A stretch of 64,000 bases of DNA, from assembly GCA_038496445.1 (NCBI GenBank), contig JALMLS010000228.1, positions 248,001 through 312,000 on the forward strand, in the 5' to 3' direction. Each line of letters starts with the position of its first letter. Position 1 is the stretch's first letter. The notes under the pieces were generated by a model. That model did no database searches and was not told the origin of the DNA. It saw only the letters and a program-made list of their open reading frames with translations. The stretch comes from Trichosphaerium sp. ATCC 40318 (Eukaryota; Protista; Tubulinea). The translations under genes were made by a program, and so were the position numbers. Positions 2,691 to 10,755 of this stretch are shown piece by piece.

Positions 2691-5174
2691 ATGGCAGCAC
2701 CAGGTACCGTTTTTTAGTTGGTTACTAAACTGCGAAAGCGTGTCTCGTTCAAACCCACTATCGACCTCAATAACACGTATTTCGACCGTAATTAACTCAT
2801 TAATGCGTTTAGCGAAAAAACGATCGTTAAAAGTACAAATTTCTGGCAAAGGACTAAAAGGAGGCTCTATTGGTACGCTACATTGTTTGTTTGAGGTGTA
2901 TCGCTCATATTTTTCTAGACAACATCCAAGACAGGCAAATTACTGTGCAATTGATTGACGGCGAGGGTAAACCGCGTCTCGACATACAATATCCTACTTT
3001 TAGCTATTTTTCTATTTATTACTATTCAGCCGCTTTTTATGATTCTTAACTACTCCTCACGGATAACCTCCTGTCATGCGTAATTGAAGACCTCCAGAGA
3101 ACATCAGTCAAATTTACTAAAGTGCGCCAACCAAACGGTACGCCCGCCCGAATACGCTTAAAACCAACAACGTATAATACTCGTTGCTTTAAACTACTTT
3201 CTACAACGCATCTATTGCTGACAGCCGATTTCTAGGCAGTTTTTTGATTACATATGAACCACAATCACCTGGTACATACTTCATAAGCCTTTTCTTATAC
3301 AAGAGTATGCTAAATCGTGGTAAAAAGTTCATGCCAAAGTTTGTCAGCGAGGTACAAAACACCATCTCAATAAAATAGATTCTCCACTTTCTTTTCCCTC
3401 TGAACTTACTTTATATCATAGCTTCTTGTGCCTAGCGCAAGCGCTTCTTCTTCTACATCACCTACGGCATCAGCGAGACATACTAAACAAAGAAGGAAGA
3501 TCACACCTAGAAATAAACGCGAAGCAAAAAAAATGAGCTTTCAAGAAAAATTGAAAACAGAAGCAGAGGCTGAATATGAAGCCTTCTTAAAATCACAAAA
3601 GGGAGAAGCACCAGTTTCACCTGTTGTAGCGCCTTTAGCGGCACCTATACCTATACCGGAAGAACCAGCATCAGTTCCTGAACCAGCTGAGAAACAAGCA
3701 CCAACACCAGAACCTAAGGCGCCTGAACCTATAGAACAAGCTCCTGAGCCACCTAAGGAACAACCTGAACCACCTGTAGAAGAAAACGGTACGAAATCTG
3801 TTGAAGAACCAGAGAAACAACCAGTTGAGGCCGAAATGCAACCAAAAGAAGAAGTCAAAGAAACACCAAAAGAAACGCCTCAGCCATCATCCAACCCTGA
3901 ACCAAGTCAACCAGAAGAACCTAAACCTGTAGCATCTAGTGATGGACCTGGACCTTTAAGAACACGGAGTAATAGTTTCAGAGACTTACAACCTGAGCAT
4001 GCTGATACTATTGATGGTATTGGTACATTTAGAAAAAGGAAATCAAGCGAAAATATATTACAAAACTTGCCCAAGTTAACTGAAAAACCTGAAAAGAAAG
4101 TGAGTTTCAATAACCAAGTTGATATATGGCAGGTTACGTAAGTTATTCGTGTATATATACATTTCATAGACTAACACTGGTATTTATTGTAGTCCTACAC
4201 CAACAGAAGAGGGGTACATGAAGGATATTAAAGTAGCTTCTAGAAATTTAAATATTTATCACGTGAGTGTTACTCTCAGTCTTTGTTTTGCTCTTTGTTA
4301 TGTGGTATTAATGTTTTATAGAACAATGGAGATATCAAAGGATTATCTCATGTTGAGGCTCTTGTAGAATTAGCCGATTCTGTACAGCAAATAGGCCACT
4401 ATTTGGTATGGTTTGTTTTATCCTTTTTTTTTTCAATTTTTTTTTGTTGCATTCTTTGGGCGTTTATTAATTATATTGTACGAAGGTCAATAACTTTGAA
4501 AATGTAACACTTTCATTAACAAACCACGACGAAGATTTAATGGAGAAAGTCCAACAACATTTGGCTTTATTGAGAACATTTGTAGGCCTGGTACGTATTT
4601 TCATAAAGTTTATGCGCCTCATATATCTTAGGACCCTGGTTTTGCTCCTCCACCACCGCCTGCCTTTGAAGAAGAATTTAACGCTGGTTTCTTGGGAGAT
4701 GCGCCACCACCTCCACCAGGGGATAGTCCAATCGGTGACTCATCAGGCATAGATGCTATTGCACCATTTGCCGATATGGTGCGAATACATTTATTTAATT
4801 TTGACTTATAAACAACCTCAGGGAGCCCCACCACCTTTGCCTGATATTAATAATGAACCACCTCGTCCTGCAATGATGGGAGGACTTGCTGGAGCTCTAA
4901 GTAATGTACATTTGAAAAAAACGCCAGCTAAGAGCGAAACTGATTTACCACCATTACCAAGAAGTCCAAGAGATGATATTGCTGCTGCAATATCTCAAGG
5001 TATAAAATTGAAGCATGTAGAAAGGTACAGTGGTCTTAGTTATTGGTTTCTAAACGATATATTTACCCTGAGTTTAGCGATGATGCGCAAGGAAATTTTG
5101 AAATTGCAGGGTCTCTTACTGATTGGCAAGCAAGTTTACGACAAACAGATAATGGAAGTGACTTGTTCAATTAA
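2691..5174 (+). CDS. Filamin-type Ig repeat, Pro/Glu-rich linker, polyproline and WH2 motifs (actin regulator)
   Basis: Spliced N-terminus SGKGLKGG...QITVQLIDGEGKPR...NGSFLITYEPQSPGTYFISL (filamin repeat) joins ORF 3428. C-terminus has PPPPP, GLAGALSNVHLKKT and RDDIAAAISQGIKLKHVE (WH2). KKVSF is an RVxF-like motif. Confidence 0.75.
2989..3060 (+). other. U12-type AT-AC intron
   Basis: 5' ATATCCT, branch site TTCTTAAC about 10 nt before a terminal AC. Removal restores the filamin-repeat frame (LDIQ|DNLL). I found no GT-AG solution that avoids the in-frame TAA at 3047. Confidence 0.8.
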
Positions 5175-5560
5175 CTTGAGATAAAAAAAAAAGAGGCAAA
5201 GAACTTGTACATTTTCTTTTCTACAACGTTATAACTCAATGGTGAGAAACGTGCAAAAAAATACATACACGTGTAAATTGATAAAGTTGTGTTATTGTTG
5301 GTTTGGTGCTAAAGCGAAAACTTGAATTGTAAATCGTGTGCAGCTTTTGTTTTTGAAATAAAAGACTTTCACTCGTAGAGTGATGGAGATGGTACAACCT
5401 AAGAAACAAGGTTGTAATTCCTTGTCGGCATCTGTAAGTACCTATTGGCTGTATCACGTGCGTGTACATTAAGCCAGGATATGGTTCATTGAATTTCTTT
5501 TTTTTCAAAACATCCCTAAAAGTTTCAAAAAACCAAACAAGCAGTTGGATAACAACACGT

Positions 5561-7740
5561 ATGGGAAACATATTTAACCGTAAGAGGAGAACGCAGGCGC
5601 CAGTTAGCGACATAAGCGCTTCAGAAGAGAGCGAAAAAGCATTAGACATTGATTCAGGCCACTCAATCAGTATAGTATGTATTGTTAGCACATTAGAATT
5701 AAAATTAACGGGTGTACAGAGAACTTTGACAGGAAAAACTTTATGGATAACAGTTGAACCTTCTAATACTGTTGAAGAGCTTAAACAGATGATCTATGAC
5801 GTAGACGGTGTCCCAGAGGACCAACAGCGTCTTATATACGCCGGTACGCGTATTTTTTTAAAGAACTAAAGCAATATCGTTCAAACGCTTATTAACACAG
5901 GTAAACAACTTGAGGACGGGCGAACGATGGAAGAATACCATCTTACAGGTAAAAACAAAAAAAGCCGATCATTCAACTAAAAAATACTCTTTCGCAGATT
6001 CTTTCAGTAAGCTTCAGAACGAAGCCCAGATAGCTGCTGGTGCTCTTATTAGTCTAAGAGACGAAGACCTTTACACTGGCCCCGAAGTTCACTTAGTACT
6101 CCGTCTACGTGGAGGTATGTACCATGAGACGAGCGGGCGTAATGATATGCATAACATTGCAACACGTGAGCCACGAACTCGCAAAGTTAAAGAGGTTAAT
6201 GTACGATCAAAAAAACCCCAGTTGAAACTTTTTTTTGTTGACTCTTTGTCTTTAGAAGAATTTCATCTATGTAAAGACAGAAACAGGGTCTGTACTGGAA
6301 ATACCTGTATCGAAAGCAAGGATATCAGGAAAGGAAATTAGAAGTACGTGTAGGAACAAGGTTTTATGTGGAGGGTAAAAACATTTAATGGATCTTACCC
6401 GAAAAAAAAACCCCTTATTCATTAACACCCTTTACAGAACTTGTGAAAAAGAAGTTACACATCGAATCAATGTCAGTTGATGAGCTTAAAAAAATGGCAT
6501 TTGATACAGTACAAGAGGATTGACAAGAAAGCAAAGAGGTTCGTTTCTAAACCAAAAATTAAAAAAAATTCGGGGTTTGCTTAAACTGGTTGTTGTAGAG
6601 CAATTCTGATAACAAATTGCTTGATATACCGAAAGAAGATCTAAAAGTAAGCCTACTAATAAGAAACAAAATAAATAATAAACCTACTTTTATTGCACAC
6701 GTGTTGAAACAATGAAGAGATTTTATAACTCATCTTTTTTTGTAGAAAATGTTGATCAAAGAGAACGAGCTTCGAAAGTCTCCAGAAACACAGGCTCTAT
6801 ACAAAAAAGCAGAAATGACAGATGAAACAGATTGGATGGAAGTTACAGATATGTTACAAAGACAGATACTCCGTGACTATGGTCTTGATGAAGTAGACTT
6901 GGAAAAAGGTAAGCAAAATATAGCTCCAAGTATTTCAAACTGACGGCTTCGCTTCTAGGTTTATTCTCACTCAGGACCGCTACAAAGCGGTTTCCAGAAC
7001 TATCTGATATCCCTCTTTATGTAAAGTACAACAGAGCAAGACAAGGTGACCTAACTGTTGGTGATCCTGCACCAAATGTTCCATTGGTTACTCTTGATGA
7101 AGTGAAAGTACATAGTCTTTGACCTTGCTTGTTTATTTTCTAATTGTTGTAGTGCGACTTGCACGATTACTGTAGTTCATCTAGACCTTTATTGTTAATG
7201 GCAGGATCATACACGTGACCACCATTGCGCGGTTTGATGAAGCATATTGAAATTCTTTTCAATGATTTCAAAGACCGTGCAGACTTTCTTTGCGTTTATA
7301 TTCTCGAAGCGCATGCTCAAGACGAATGGTATTCATATCTCTTTCTTCATAAAATGAACATAAGAACTATAGTTACTAAGATATTTGTAGGCCTATTTCA
7401 AGCGCAAGATTTCATGATGGCGAACCAGTCATTTTGATTCAACAAAAAACAATATCTGAGCGTGTTGAGACAGCCAAAGCATTCGTAAAACGTTATGAAA
7501 CTGAAGTACCTGTTGTATGTGATACTATGACCAACGAGTTTGAGAAAAAATATGCTCCTTGGCCTGTAAGGTTCTACATAGTAAACAACAGGAAAATGGC
7601 TCACATTGAAAATCCAGAGGTAAAAAAATGTCTTTTTTCTTTTTTGCCACGTGGTTCAACCATGTACTCACTTTTTCTTAAAGGGATGCACGTATTATAT
7701 CGGTCGTGTACGTAAAGCGTTAGAATCCATACTGGATTAG
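5561..7740 (+). CDS. Ubiquitin-like domain fused to an iodothyronine-deiodinase-like selenoprotein (Sec UGA at 7216-7218)
   Basis: Exons 5561-5674, 5720-5843, 5901-5948, 5998-~6200, 6256-6343, 6438-6508 (or 6538), 6599-6646, 6746-6908, 6959-7107, 7153-7328, 7391-7619, 7684-7740. Ubiquitin motifs: RTLTGK, QQRLIYAGKQLEDGRT, HLVLRLRGG. Deiodinase motifs: GDPAPN, AGSYT-U-PPLR, ADFLCVYILEAHAQDEWP, VVCDTMTN, YAPWPVRFYIV. Confidence 0.85.
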
Positions 7741-7753
7741 ATATCTTGAAAAT

Positions 7754-7837
7754 CACATGAACAAGAATGAAGCTTCCTTTGGCAAAGCCTTTTTTACAAG
7801 GCACCAAGGTAATTATGCTGACATACATTTGTTTGTG
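7754..7837 (+). promoter_or_regulatory. SECIS element (form II) in the 3' UTR of the deiodinase-like gene
   Basis: ATGAA core (7767), 12-nt helix II arm, unpaired AAA (7784-86), apical helix GCCTT/AAGGC, 3' arm CCAAGG...GC, TGAC (7819), and helix I CATGAACAA/TTGTTTGTG. Starts about 25 nt after the TAG; AATAAA lies near 7861. Confidence 0.72.
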
Positions 7838-7989
7838 TATCAAGTTGTACTTGTAGTATAAATAAATAAACACATTGTGGACGGCGTAAAGCTGATCAAA
7901 AACTCCACAAACAGCATTATTTAGCAATTTAACATACACTTTACAAATCTTAATAACACAAAAGAGTACTAAGTTCCTTACGTAATTAG

Positions 7990-8988
7990 CTAAAGCCTCC
8001 AACAACAGTAGGTTTTAGGGTAGTGTTTATCCAAAATACAGCAATAAAGCCGTCTTATATGCGCTCCTTTCAGTGCTCTCAACCCAACACGTGTCACATT
8101 AGTGTGGCTAAGATAGATAGTATGAACACCAACCAATGCTTTGACACCTTCATCAGTTACATATGTGTAATGAAGATTTATGGTGTGAACGCCAGCTAGT
8201 GCTTTGATGCCTTCATCTGTAGCACAAGTCTGAGAAAGATTTATGGTATGCACACCAGCTAGTGCTTTGATACCTTCATCTGTCACACAAGTGTACCGAA
8301 GATTTATTGTATGAACACCAACCAACGCTTTTACACCTTTATCTGTCACACGTGTATCACATAGATTTATAGTATGCGCGCCAGCCAATGCTTTGACTCC
8401 TTTATCTGTTACACAAGTGCGACAAAGATCAATTGTATGAACACCAGCCAATAATATGATACTTTCATCAGTCACACTTGTATAGGAAAGATTAATTGTA
8501 TGTGCACCAACCAACGCTTTGACACCTTTGTCTGTCACACAAGTATCAGAAAGATCAATTTTATGCACACCAGCAAGTGCAATGATGCCTTTATCTGTCA
8601 CGTTAGTCCGAGAAAGGTCTATTGTATGGACACCTGCCAGTGCTTGTACAAGTTTTTGTTGAACATGACGAATACAAATAGAAATAGAAAAGGCGTCCTT
8701 GAGGTGCTTTCTGAATTGTCTTGCTGTTATAATGTAATAAATCCTTACATTACACGATCTTAAATAAAAAGGGTAGTTCTGTTCGTGATATCTTTCAAGT
8801 TGTTCTTGGTTTTCTATTTTAATAATGCGTGCTGGTGGTGTATAGTCTAAGTAATCTTGTGCTATATCCAAAAACAGTGTACATGTTAGTCTTACATACA
8901 GACTGTAGCTTTTCGGAACACAACGAAGGATTCTAACCAATATTTCGTATGGTAGAGCACCAAGCAATCCAGCTGTGTGGGTTTCCAT
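7990..8988 (-). CDS. Intronless F-box + 21-aa LRR protein
   Basis: N-terminal LPYEILVRILRCVP...LTCTLF (F-box), then 9 tandem GVHTIxLxxTxVTDxGxKALx repeats (63-nt unit). Confidence 0.9.
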   Translation of the reverse strand: METHTAGLLGALPYEILVRILRCVPKSYSLYVRLTCTLFLDIAQDYLDYTPPARIIKIENQEQLERYHEQNYPFYLRSCNVRIYYIITARQFRKHLKDAFSISICIRHVQQKLVQALAGVHTIDLSRTNVTDKGIIALAGVHKIDLSDTCVTDKGVKALVGAHTINLSYTSVTDESIILLAGVHTIDLCRTCVTDKGVKALAGAHTINLCDTRVTDKGVKALVGVHTINLRYTCVTDEGIKALAGVHTINLSQTCATDEGIKALAGVHTINLHYTYVTDEGVKALVGVHTIYLSHTNVTRVGLRALKGAHIRRLYCCILDKHYPKTYCCWRL

Positions 8989-9007
8989 TTAAACGTTACT
9001 TTCTAGG

Positions 9008-9410
9008 CTTATGGTGGCGAAGTAGAGTAGTAATAATTTACCTATTGTGGTCGTACGAGAAGATGCGACAGTGAAAATTTCTATCTAGTACTACCTTTCC
9101 GAAGTATTCTGTGAATAATATGCGAATCAGCCTAAGGCACTGATGATGTCTTAACAATTGTAATAATCGCTGTGGTCACCGAGACGGTGGACCCTATTGG
9201 GTCGGTCTTGATAAGCAGGACAGTTTTAAACGCGAGCAGCAGCAAAGGCGCCCAAATAGGCAGTAGCCAAGACAACGAAGGCGGTGTTCCAGTATAGACA
9301 GCTGGAATGTGGACATGGAAGTCGTCATCCTCTAACTTCTCACCAGCCGAATTGGGACGTGCCGAAAATGGATGGCGCTAAACTGCCTTAGCCACCGCTG
9401 CGATCGCCCC
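9008..9410 (+). pseudogene. Degenerate LSU (28S) rRNA domain-II fragment
   Basis: Collinear matches to conserved LSU motifs: ATCTAGTA...TCCGAAGT, GCGAAT, TAAGCAG, AAGGCGCCC, TATAGACAGC.GG...TGG.CATGGAAGTCG..ATCC.CTAA, CTCACC.GCCGAAT, GAAAATGGATGGCGCT. Internal deletions are present (for example GGAGTGTGTAA is missing). Confidence 0.8.
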
Positions 9411-9808
9411 GGCTCGACCCAGAAACTAAACATGGATACCGTTGTTAGGCCTACTTATATACACAATAAGATAAAGTTGATCGTTCGTTCTTACACCCTT
9501 TGTTACAGAGATGAAGGTTATTGTAGACATGTTCATACTACAGTTTCATACAAGAGTGACAGATACAGGTGTTATGGCTTTGGTTTCACAATACTGCATT
9601 TTAGTGCTGGCAGTACTGGTTGGAAAGTTGGTTAACATCACTAAGAGACATGCAAAAACATAGCACTGTACAAGCTTGGTTTATATAGTATGCCTGTTGT
9701 AGCTAGTCAAATAACGAATGCATATTCATCTATGTGATGAAAAGATTGAGAGTATCAAAAATGAGTATTGCGATATAAAGAGATGTAGTTGTGTGGGTAA
9801 AATAATTG

Positions 9809-9831
9809 CCTCACTGTTAGCAACAGTGAGG
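9809..9831. repeat. Short perfect hairpin CCTCACTGTT-AGC-AACAGTGAGG; half-site GCAACAGTGAG recurs near 9878
   Basis: Seen directly upstream of the secreted-protein gene. Confidence 0.6.
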
Positions 9832-10020
9832 TTTTTTTCTTATTTTTTACATAAACATTTTCACGTGATAACTATTGGCAACAGTGAGTGTTAACCTTCT
9901 AAAACCGGCAAAAATGTGCAACACAAGAATGGACTTTGTGCTTAAACAATTTAAATTATTTAGCGTACACATTTAGCGGCAAGTCTCTGTTGTTTGACAC
10001 AAAGCTAAACTTTGAACAAG

Positions 10021-10755
10021 ATGCGCATCTTATCACTCGCTGTTCTTTCTTTCGTACTGTACTACGTACAGTGCATATCAAAAATGCCTTTACAAGCTCA
10101 GGAGTCAACTGTTTACAATCTGAAGATAACCATCAACCCAAAGTACTTGCCACTTCTTCAAGAGACTGACGAACGTGTTACTATCGTGAAATCAACGCCA
10201 AACGAAAACACAAACTATTTCGTAATGGCATCATTTTCTCCCTTTCCGAACAACTTCATCTCCCTTGATACATCTAAACGTTATATATACGCTTCATTCT
10301 CAAAGCTAGAGCCAGGGAAAGTCTTATTCATGGGCGACACAAAGAAAATCGACCTAGGATTCCTATATCCGTTCCATTACACCTTACAAGATGGCTTCTC
10401 AGTTCCTTACGTCGATAATAATCAAATTGGATTATTTTACAACGAAACAGGACATAACGACATTTTAACTTTTGGCGTTGGGCAAAACGTGACAGTGAAC
10501 GGTCAAGAATTTTCTAACATTGCTACTTTTGGTGATATGTTTCTTCCTGAGACTAAGAAAGTATATACACTTTCAGATGATGTATACGTATTCTTGTCGG
10601 GACCTTCGAAACCAAATACTATCATTGGTATCGGTGAAGAAGCTCTAGAAGGATTTGCATCTTCTTTGATTTACAGAGTTAAGTTTGATGCGTCACATGA
10701 TGATATTGTAATTGATTATGACTTACCTAATGGACGTTTTGTTGTTGTGAGTTAA
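10021..10755 (+). CDS. Intronless secreted beta-rich hypothetical protein
   Basis: 244-aa ORF with signal peptide MRILSLAVLSFVLYYVQC, followed directly by AATAAA. Confidence 0.8.
   Translation: MRILSLAVLSFVLYYVQCISKMPLQAQESTVYNLKITINPKYLPLLQETDERVTIVKSTPNENTNYFVMASFSPFPNNFISLDTSKRYIYASFSKLEPGKVLFMGDTKKIDLGFLYPFHYTLQDGFSVPYVDNNQIGLFYNETGHNDILTFGVGQNVTVNGQEFSNIATFGDMFLPETKKVYTLSDDVYVFLSGPSKPNTIIGIGEEALEGFASSLIYRVKFDASHDDIVIDYDLPNGRFVVVS

Follow-up and report, generated by a model that had tools for sequence, protein, structure and literature searches.

What does a stop codon do in the middle of a coding sequence that is otherwise intact and spliced? This question is raised by the gene at positions 5561-7740 of a 64,000-nucleotide stretch of DNA from the marine amoeba Trichosphaerium sp. 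ATCC 40318 (contig JALMLS010000228.1, positions 248,001 to 312,000 of the forward strand), which is called the window herein. From its sequence, the gene is predicted to encode a modular selenoprotein with a ubiquitin-like domain, a MYHETSGR motif, a beta-grasp-like tail, a linker, and a deiodinase-like module with a catalytic selenocysteine (Sec). Two in-frame UGA codons were found, codons 221 and 368, and both are exonic in the mature mRNA. UGA-368 is the catalytic Sec codon, and UGA-221 lies in the linker between the two halves of the protein. Comparison with relatives suggests that the linker UGA is a conserved family feature of the ubiquitin-fused members, apparently undescribed. It looks like a translational gate, and not like an intron remnant or a splicing switch.

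The linker UGA in the spliced mRNA

An earlier note on this DNA had pointed to an in-frame TGA at 6521 in exon 6, which reads ...FDTVQED-TGA-QESKE, and to two phase-0 donors, GTACAA (6509) and GTTCGT (6539), that share the acceptor AG at 6597-98. Both features were confirmed in the window sequence, and the exon walk places the TGA at codon 221. The frame is kept when either 6509-6598 (90 nt) or 6539-6598 (60 nt) is removed. The note had taken the two donors as competing sites that gate the deiodinase half, so that the choice of donor would decide between a ubiquitin-only product and the full fusion.

The RNA evidence consists of spliced contigs from three public runs (three studies), which were mapped onto positions 5001-9500 of the window. 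The GT..AG joints of the contigs define a gene of 12 exons, whose 499 codons include no stop other than the two UGAs. Exons 1 to 6 are joined in X3 record 8, and exon 4 is joined to the untranslated region at the 3' end (3'UTR) in the single contig X1 record 2. All three contigs over exon 6 continue past 6509, to 6536 in X1 and X2 and to 6532, the contig end, in X3. In X1 record 2 and X2 record 6, 50 unplaced letters lie between 6536 and 6746, equal to 2 nt (6537-38) plus the 48-nt exon 7. These 50 letters fit only the junctions 6538|6599 and 6646|6746, and the use of donor 6509 and intron retention are thereby excluded in these two contigs. When the junction from 6508 to 6599 was compared with that from 6538 to 6599, only read-through of 6509 was seen, and the TGA is not purely intronic. 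Because the contigs of three studies read through 6509 and two of them fit only 6538|6599, UGA-221 is exonic in the assembled mRNA. The gating by competing splice sites was therefore not borne out by any of the three spliced contigs over the site. The companion claim is supported: the contigs of three studies retain the UGA, the donor in use is 6539, and since UGA-221 stays in the mature mRNA, the deiodinase half needs recoding.

The linker UGA in related lineages

An exhaustive HMMER search with exon 9 gave 101 relatives, and DNA of relatives was obtained by exact-protein look-ups and one metagenome scan. The upstream sequence of L005, L042, and L043 was too short to inform the comparison. 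In most relatives the predicted protein stops at the Sec UGA, right after G-S-x-[ST]. The N-terminal part shared by the relatives reads ...(I)PK(E/D)xLxxML.REN.LRLSPE.Q...DWM.VT..LQ...IPLYVKYNRAR.G...

The architecture of the window gene was found in nine further lineages (L003/4, L006/7, L008, L009, L010, L015, L025, L027-32, and L033/34). In a single frame, each has an upstream open reading frame (ORF), a TGA, 11-46 codons, ML.REN.LR, the deiodinase module, and the TGA for Sec. The deiodinase N-terminal parts of the nine lineages share 33-56% mutual identity, except for 69% between L027 and L034, and their G+C content ranges from 0.30 to 0.60. The Pfam ubiquitin profile matches the upstream ORF in all lineages but L006/7 and L025, among them L003, L008, L009 (twice), L010, L015 (together with SAP and SAM), and L034. 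In L025 the RLRGG end of ubiquitin is kept, a RanBP2-type zinc finger is present, and the profile matches weakly on the segment after the motif, the counterpart of exon 5. The contig of L006/7 is cut at its 5' end, and no upstream ubiquitin is visible on it.

The ubiquitin forms carry RLRGG-M(Y/F)H..SGR, then a variable linker, and then the deiodinase-like module. A frame-agnostic scan found each GG-M(Y/F)H..SGR on the deiodinase strand to be in the deiodinase frame, with the exception of L024, which lacks ubiquitin and apparently has an intron separating the motif from the deiodinase. Between motif and deiodinase module, TGA is the only stop in the ubiquitin forms, never TAA or TAG, and it is present twice in L027-32. 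All nine other ubiquitin-module lineages have TGA as the linker stop, and it is in frame wherever the linker is unspliced. The conservation in orthologs that the earlier note had proposed to check was thus found in nine further lineages. The non-ubiquitin forms, with their start at or close to (M)G-M.H.TSGR, lack a stop at the linker.

The final stops of these genes are mixed by lineage, with about 8 TAA, 6 TAG, and 4 TGA. Because of this mixture, a linker stop that is TGA in 10 of 10 and in frame in 10 of 10 is not expected of ordinary terminators. The recurrence in relatives indicates that the in-frame UGA is more than chance. An alternative genetic code was considered and rejected, since the family genes terminate in TAA, TAG, or TGA.

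The MYH motif and the deiodinase module are on a single uninterrupted ORF in P0017, P0024, P0058, P0020, and P0036. P0017, with the order kinase-ubiquitin-GGMYHETSGR-deiodinase, is a ubiquitin form without the linker UGA. As motif and deiodinase share an ORF in these relatives, the parts before and after UGA-221 belong to one protein.

Other features of the relatives were recorded during the survey. P0036 (219 aa) has a histone-H3-tail-like start, MVRTKQTARKSTGG, joined directly to MYMPSSGRRDF in place of the RLRGG of ubiquitin. P0014 and P0075 are public calls with W at the Sec position (GSFS-W-PP and GSYT-W-PPF), a misleading annotation that probably comes from a table with UGA as Trp. L001 is the closest relative by exon 9 (70% identity). 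Its separate genes for the ubiquitin-GGMFHETSG protein and the deiodinase-like selenoprotein, L001:129-719 (-) and L001:865-1668 (+), lie head to head on an AT-rich intronless contig beside a DUF4116 gene, the same is seen in L002 and L026, and they stand in a Rosetta-stone relation to the fused gene of the window. Only 3 matches came from a word-based homologue search with the ubiquitin-module protein of L001. A giant-virus origin of the AT-rich intronless contigs L001 and L008 is not supported, as the viral contig scan found none.

Proposed decoding of the linker UGA and the alternatives

The reading preferred here is that UGA-221 is decoded, probably as Sec via the same Sec insertion sequence (SECIS) as UGA-368, in competition with termination. 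A short ubiquitin-module product and the full fusion would then be made from one mRNA. A probability of about 0.6 is given to this reading. At UGA-221, ribosomes would either stop or add an amino acid. In the first case a 220-residue ubiquitin-module protein would result. Insertion, most likely of Sec via the 3'UTR SECIS that also serves UGA-368, would give the 499-residue fusion. UGA-221 would act as a translational gate at the module boundary, determine how much short relative to full-length product is made, and tie the synthesis of the deiodinase module to the Sec-decoding capacity. By analogy with selenoprotein P (SELENOP), it may also act as a checkpoint, and stopping there would free an intact ubiquitin-module protein and not a half-made deiodinase domain.

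The 3'UTR is at most 250 nt long and holds one SECIS candidate, a hairpin at 7767-7821. A crude scan of both strands (128 kb) found 5 such sites, and this one is the sole one in the 3'UTR; the chance of one such site there is estimated at about 0.005. The Rfam SECIS models gave no match on the window, and SECIS_1 also misses most relatives. This negative result carries little weight because the model is insensitive for the relatives. Rfam gave only sub-threshold matches in a few relatives, and such a match to SECIS_1 was found in L003, which has the same architecture as the window gene. The recoding proposed in the earlier note had two versions. For the one via the same SECIS, a single candidate element is available in the 3'UTR, and the one via leaky UGA-C readthrough is not supported, as the codons after the linker UGA vary (CAA, ATG, CTT, CAA, CAG, GGA, GTG, ATG, ACG, and ACC, with CAA in the window). 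SECIS-dependent Sec insertion is favoured over context-driven near-cognate readthrough, because the codon is always UGA, its 3' context is variable, no conserved hairpin follows it in relatives, and a SECIS-like element is in the mRNA.

Translation of the sequence after the UGA was considered separately. No AUG is present between the linker TGA and the conserved (I)PK(E/D)xLxxML in the window, L008, L009, L015, L027, and L034. A restart at the Met of ML.REN would lose the conserved IPKEDLKK residues, as they lie upstream of that Met. In the related species L027 and L034, RQ-TGA-TES[VI]P.GDQ is conserved. The ratio of nonsynonymous to synonymous differences (pN/pS) between them is 0.57 after the TGA (27 codons), compared with 0.52 in each of two other parts, ubiquitin and deiodinase N-terminal. 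L027 also has a second, upstream TGA followed by 66 AUG-free codons, and these are homologous to an uninterrupted upstream ORF in L034. A Sec/Cys swap at the linker was not established; the Cys of L034 is one codon off the extra UGA of L027, and the alignment is ambiguous.

Several observations weigh against decoding. The SECIS-like element was found by hand, its helix II contains a 3x7 internal loop, and it is without an Rfam match. When the 91 nt after the linker UGA were folded in nine relatives, no conserved hairpin was found (z = -2.4 in L010, the others near 0). The pN/pS value after the TGA comes from just 27 codons. Distant lineages do not conserve the residues on either side of the UGA, and a chemical role for Sec at the linker is therefore unlikely. 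In L018:1-194, a relative of L015 known from a single metatranscriptome contig, an in-frame TAA lies in the SAM-like segment (...CAELGV-TAA-ELHRKKLL...) and no linker TGA is present; apart from this TAA, every in-frame stop seen upstream of a deiodinase module is TGA. Translation through UGA-221 is itself a step that we infer from these sequence comparisons. We likewise infer that Sec is the inserted residue, that the short product is functional, and that the product ratio responds to selenium.

Further opposing evidence bears on the possibility that UGA-221 simply ends translation like any other stop. In that case the mRNA would be functionally bicistronic; the first ORF would yield the ubiquitin-module protein, and the deiodinase would be made separately, through reinitiation at AUG 6749 or through transcription that starts internally. 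Such internal starts, and a minor 6508|6599 isoform, may exist beside the transcripts represented by the contigs. L001/L026 encode a ubiquitin-MFHETSG protein (196 aa) and a deiodinase as divergent neighbour genes, in L041 the deiodinase stands alone and has a start of its own, and P0103 and P0104 are stand-alone ubiquitin-GGMFHETSG proteins. The existence of these separate and stand-alone forms indicates that a short product and a separately initiated deiodinase would be biologically viable. In four lineages an AUG is found within 0 to 10 codons after the TGA, directly after it in L003 and L025 and within 2 to 10 codons in L010 and L006, and the M of ML.REN is common across the family. However, reinitiation needs neither a shared frame nor a TGA, yet ten lineages have both. 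The conserved IPKEDLKK lies upstream of the only candidate AUG of the window, the 66 AUG-free codons between the two TGAs of L027 are homologous to L034 sequence taken as translated, and the contigs splice exon 6 to the deiodinase exons. Reinitiation after a 220-codon ORF is generally inefficient. Termination at UGA-221 with a separate start is considered unlikely.

A shade less probable still is a UGA that is decoded and has no function, a neutral passenger tolerated in an unconstrained linker given an efficient SECIS. Tolerance of this kind is suggested by the further in-frame TGAs in the deiodinase domain of L033/L034, where L027 has Arg and Leu, by the extra linker TGA of L027 that is absent from L034, and by the unconserved flanking residues. 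Random tolerance would, however, scatter such codons without tracking the domain architecture. The codon is present in 9 of the 10 lineages with a ubiquitin fusion and absent from every non-ubiquitin form, it is always at the boundary just before the deiodinase module, and it is conserved with its flanks between L027 and L034.

The additional TGAs of L033/L034 are worth recording on their own. Two more are in frame downstream of the Sec codon (...NGPV-TGA-VEQP... and ...DAFE-TGA-RFAPWPF...), both independent contigs have them, and this lineage may hold four or five UGAs in one gene.

A splice switch, in which donor 6509 is sometimes used to make a UGA-free fusion and donor 6539 to make a ubiquitin-only product, is not supported and has a very low probability. 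Of the 11 donors of the gene, 10 begin with GTA; the used donor 6539 (GTT) is the sole exception, and the unused GTACAA at 6509 is closer to the usual type. The frame is kept either way, and minor use of 6509 could go unseen because contigs drop rare isoforms. Against this, 6509 is used in 0 of 3 contigs. The relatives L008, L027-L032, L010, and L025 carry the UGA in uninterrupted ORFs on genomic contigs without an intron there. According to our estimate, about every second used donor would by chance have a phase-0 GT in the 30 nt upstream of it, and the second donor is not beyond chance. An assembly error or a pseudogene, for which nothing speaks except the premature stop codon itself, can be dismissed, as the TGA is identical in the genome and in the RNA contigs of three studies, the ORF is otherwise intact and spliced, and the feature is conserved in other lineages.

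Recoding of UGA-221 is thus the supported reading, and it can be compared with known systems. Vertebrate type 2 deiodinase (DIO2) has a second, non-catalytic UGA near its C-terminus, a few codons before the normal stop, which can be read as Sec or as stop. Such non-catalytic UGAs in selenoprotein mRNAs are usually regarded as curiosities. The window gene is similar to DIO2 as a deiodinase-family selenoprotein with one catalytic and one non-catalytic UGA. The extra UGA of DIO2 is downstream of the catalytic Sec, whereas UGA-221 is 147 codons upstream of it and separates modules. With the programmed readthrough of retroviral gag-pol UAG and of the tobamovirus replicase, the gene would share the use of one mRNA for an abundant short product, made by termination, and a less abundant longer fusion, made by decoding of the stop. 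In those systems near-cognate tRNAs act together with local context or a pseudoknot; here the codon is always UGA, the context is variable, and a SECIS-like element is present. Similar to the ubiquitin-fusion genes UBA52 and RPS27A, LRLRGG is fused directly to the first Met of the partner. Unlike in those genes, the ubiquitin of the window has a 38-residue extension and an insertion, and its partner is not a ribosomal protein but a putative selenoenzyme precursor with a gate codon.

In SELENOP, the first UGA is an inefficient bottleneck, and the downstream UGAs are then decoded efficiently (PMC5727441). SELENOP also has more than one in-frame UGA per mRNA, and a stop at an early UGA gives a short isoform; the same logic is proposed for UGA-221 before UGA-368. 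SELENOP differs in having two SECIS elements and a stimulatory hairpin after its first UGA, compared with one SECIS-like candidate here and no conserved hairpin in the relatives. Its Sec residues are cargo or active site, whereas the first UGA here is in a non-conserved linker at a domain boundary. The deiodinase-like selenoprotein of Dictyostelium, likewise an amoebozoan member of the T4_deiodinase family, has a type II SECIS with a mini-stem and an AAA that is unpaired (Lobanov et al. 2007, PMC2375036), as is also seen in the candidate hairpin here. PMC2375036 reports neither a ubiquitin module nor a second UGA for it. Full-text literature searches brought up neither a ubiquitin-fused deiodinase-like selenoprotein nor a conserved linker UGA, and neither feature is mentioned in the eukaryotic and algal selenoproteome surveys PMC2375036 and PMC7539508.

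The linker UGA marks a domain boundary and tracks the ubiquitin fusion across lineages of 30% to 60% G+C. If it is decoded, it would be a natural SECIS-dependent recoding event that joins two proteins found elsewhere as separate neighbour genes or as a plain fusion. It would also offer a simple system for the idea of a first UGA as a checkpoint outside SELENOP. The wider proposal is more tentative, that a conserved non-catalytic boundary UGA in the ubiquitin-fused members of many protist lineages serves as a SECIS-dependent gate and fail-early checkpoint, which would let only ribosomes able to decode Sec make the deiodinase domain, in effect a selenium-coupled gene fusion. Gene callers split each of these genes in three, so neither the family nor its link to the ubiquitin system can be seen in public annotation. 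This link is seen in the N-terminal modules of relatives and paralogues, which include ubiquitin, F-box, and RanBP2-type zinc finger.

Modules, coordinates, and neighbourhood of the gene

The spliced model was searched exon by exon, and the features are listed in Table 1. The Pfam ubiquitin profile matches exon 2 with an E value of 1.4e-10, and in the ubiquitin-like part about 30 residues are inserted ahead of the last strand. It does not start at the initiator Met; the 38-residue extension of exon 1 precedes it. The junction LVLRLRGG-M (6093-6119) abuts the partner directly, as in ubiquitin-fusion genes, and the identical junction is present in eight relatives. By analogy, the LRLRGG|M junction suggests removal of the ubiquitin by deubiquitinases. 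The Pfam T4_deiodinase profile (PF00837) matches colinearly over positions 93-214, in exon 10a (93-113, E 0.23), exon 10b (115-149, E 6.6e-5), and exon 11 (155-214, E 8.3e-7). A weak match in the PDB was found to type III deiodinase, 4tr3. The catalytic UGA is in the active-site context G-S-x-[ST]-U-P-P. For exons 4 and 8, the look-alikes in the ESM Atlas gave no useful information, and a search of 4500-10500 against Rfam found no family.

Table 1 Features of the gene, in window coordinates.
Feature	Positions	Strand	Remarks
Exon 1	5561-5674	+	ATG 5561; 38-residue N-terminal extension MGNIFNRKRR...; X2 record 4, X3 record 8; joint 5674|5720
Exon 2	5720-5843	+	Contig joints; Pfam ubiquitin match
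Ubiquitin-like domain	5720-6116	+	Exons 2, 3, and first part of 4; ends LVLRLRGG (GG = 6111-6116); Pfam
Exon 3	5901-5948	+	Contig joints
Exon 4	5998-6200	+	Contig joints; joint 6200|6256
Motif MYHETSGRND	6117-6146	+	Immediately after ubiquitin GG; also in P0017, L003, L009, L010, L015, L025, L027, L034
Exon 5	6256-6343	+	Small beta-grasp-like segment NFIYVKTETGSVLEIPVSK...; joints 6200|6256 and 6343|6438
Exon 6	6438-6538	+	Holds linker UGA; X1 6438-6536, X2 6438-6536, X3 6438-6532
Candidate alternative donor GTACAA	6509-6514	+	Phase 0; used by no contig
Linker UGA	6521-6523	+	Codon 221, in frame, followed by CAA; exonic in three contigs; X1 and X3 without differing letters
Intron 6	6539-6598	+	60 nt; donor GTTCGT
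Exon 7	6599-6646	+	48 nt; SNSDNKLLDIPKEDLK; placed by length fit
IPKEDLK, family-conserved	6626-6646	+	Exon 7, upstream of first AUG after UGA; IPKEDLKK spans 6626-6748
Exon 8	6746-6908	+	Holds conserved ML.REN.LR motif
First in-frame AUG after linker UGA	6749-6751	+	Codon 244, M of ML.REN.LR; exon 8
Exon 9	6959-7107	+	Deiodinase-like thioredoxin-fold module begins; contig joints
Deiodinase-like thioredoxin-fold module	6959-7742	+	Exons 9-12; Pfam T4_deiodinase, contig joints
Exon 10	7153-7328	+	T4_deiodinase match; catalytic Sec codon
Catalytic Sec codon UGA	7216-7218	+	Codon 368, AGSYT-U-PP; T4_deiodinase profile position 114
Exon 11	7391-7619	+	T4_deiodinase match
Exon 12	7684-7742	+	Stop codon TAG 7738-7740, codon 500
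SECIS-like hairpin	7767-7821	+	AUGA 7767-7770, 12-nt helix strand, unpaired AAA 7784-7786, mini-stem, GA 7820-7821; found by hand, folded

At the 5' end of X3 record 8 (about 5551), 40 further letters are unplaced on the window and could be a 5' exon, a leader, or an adaptor. Minus-strand contigs at 5096-5263 stop about 270 nt upstream of the 5' end of the gene, and a divergent neighbour may share the promoter region. On the other side, a convergent gene with F-box and leucine-rich repeats (7990-8988, minus strand) bounds the 3'UTR of the fusion gene. The contigs over it have many joints that skip or go back among repeats of about 84 nt, as expected from paralogues with shuffled repeat cores. 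At 9050-9500, short X2 and X5 contigs reach depths of 10^4 to 10^5, and this region may be a highly expressed or repeated element.

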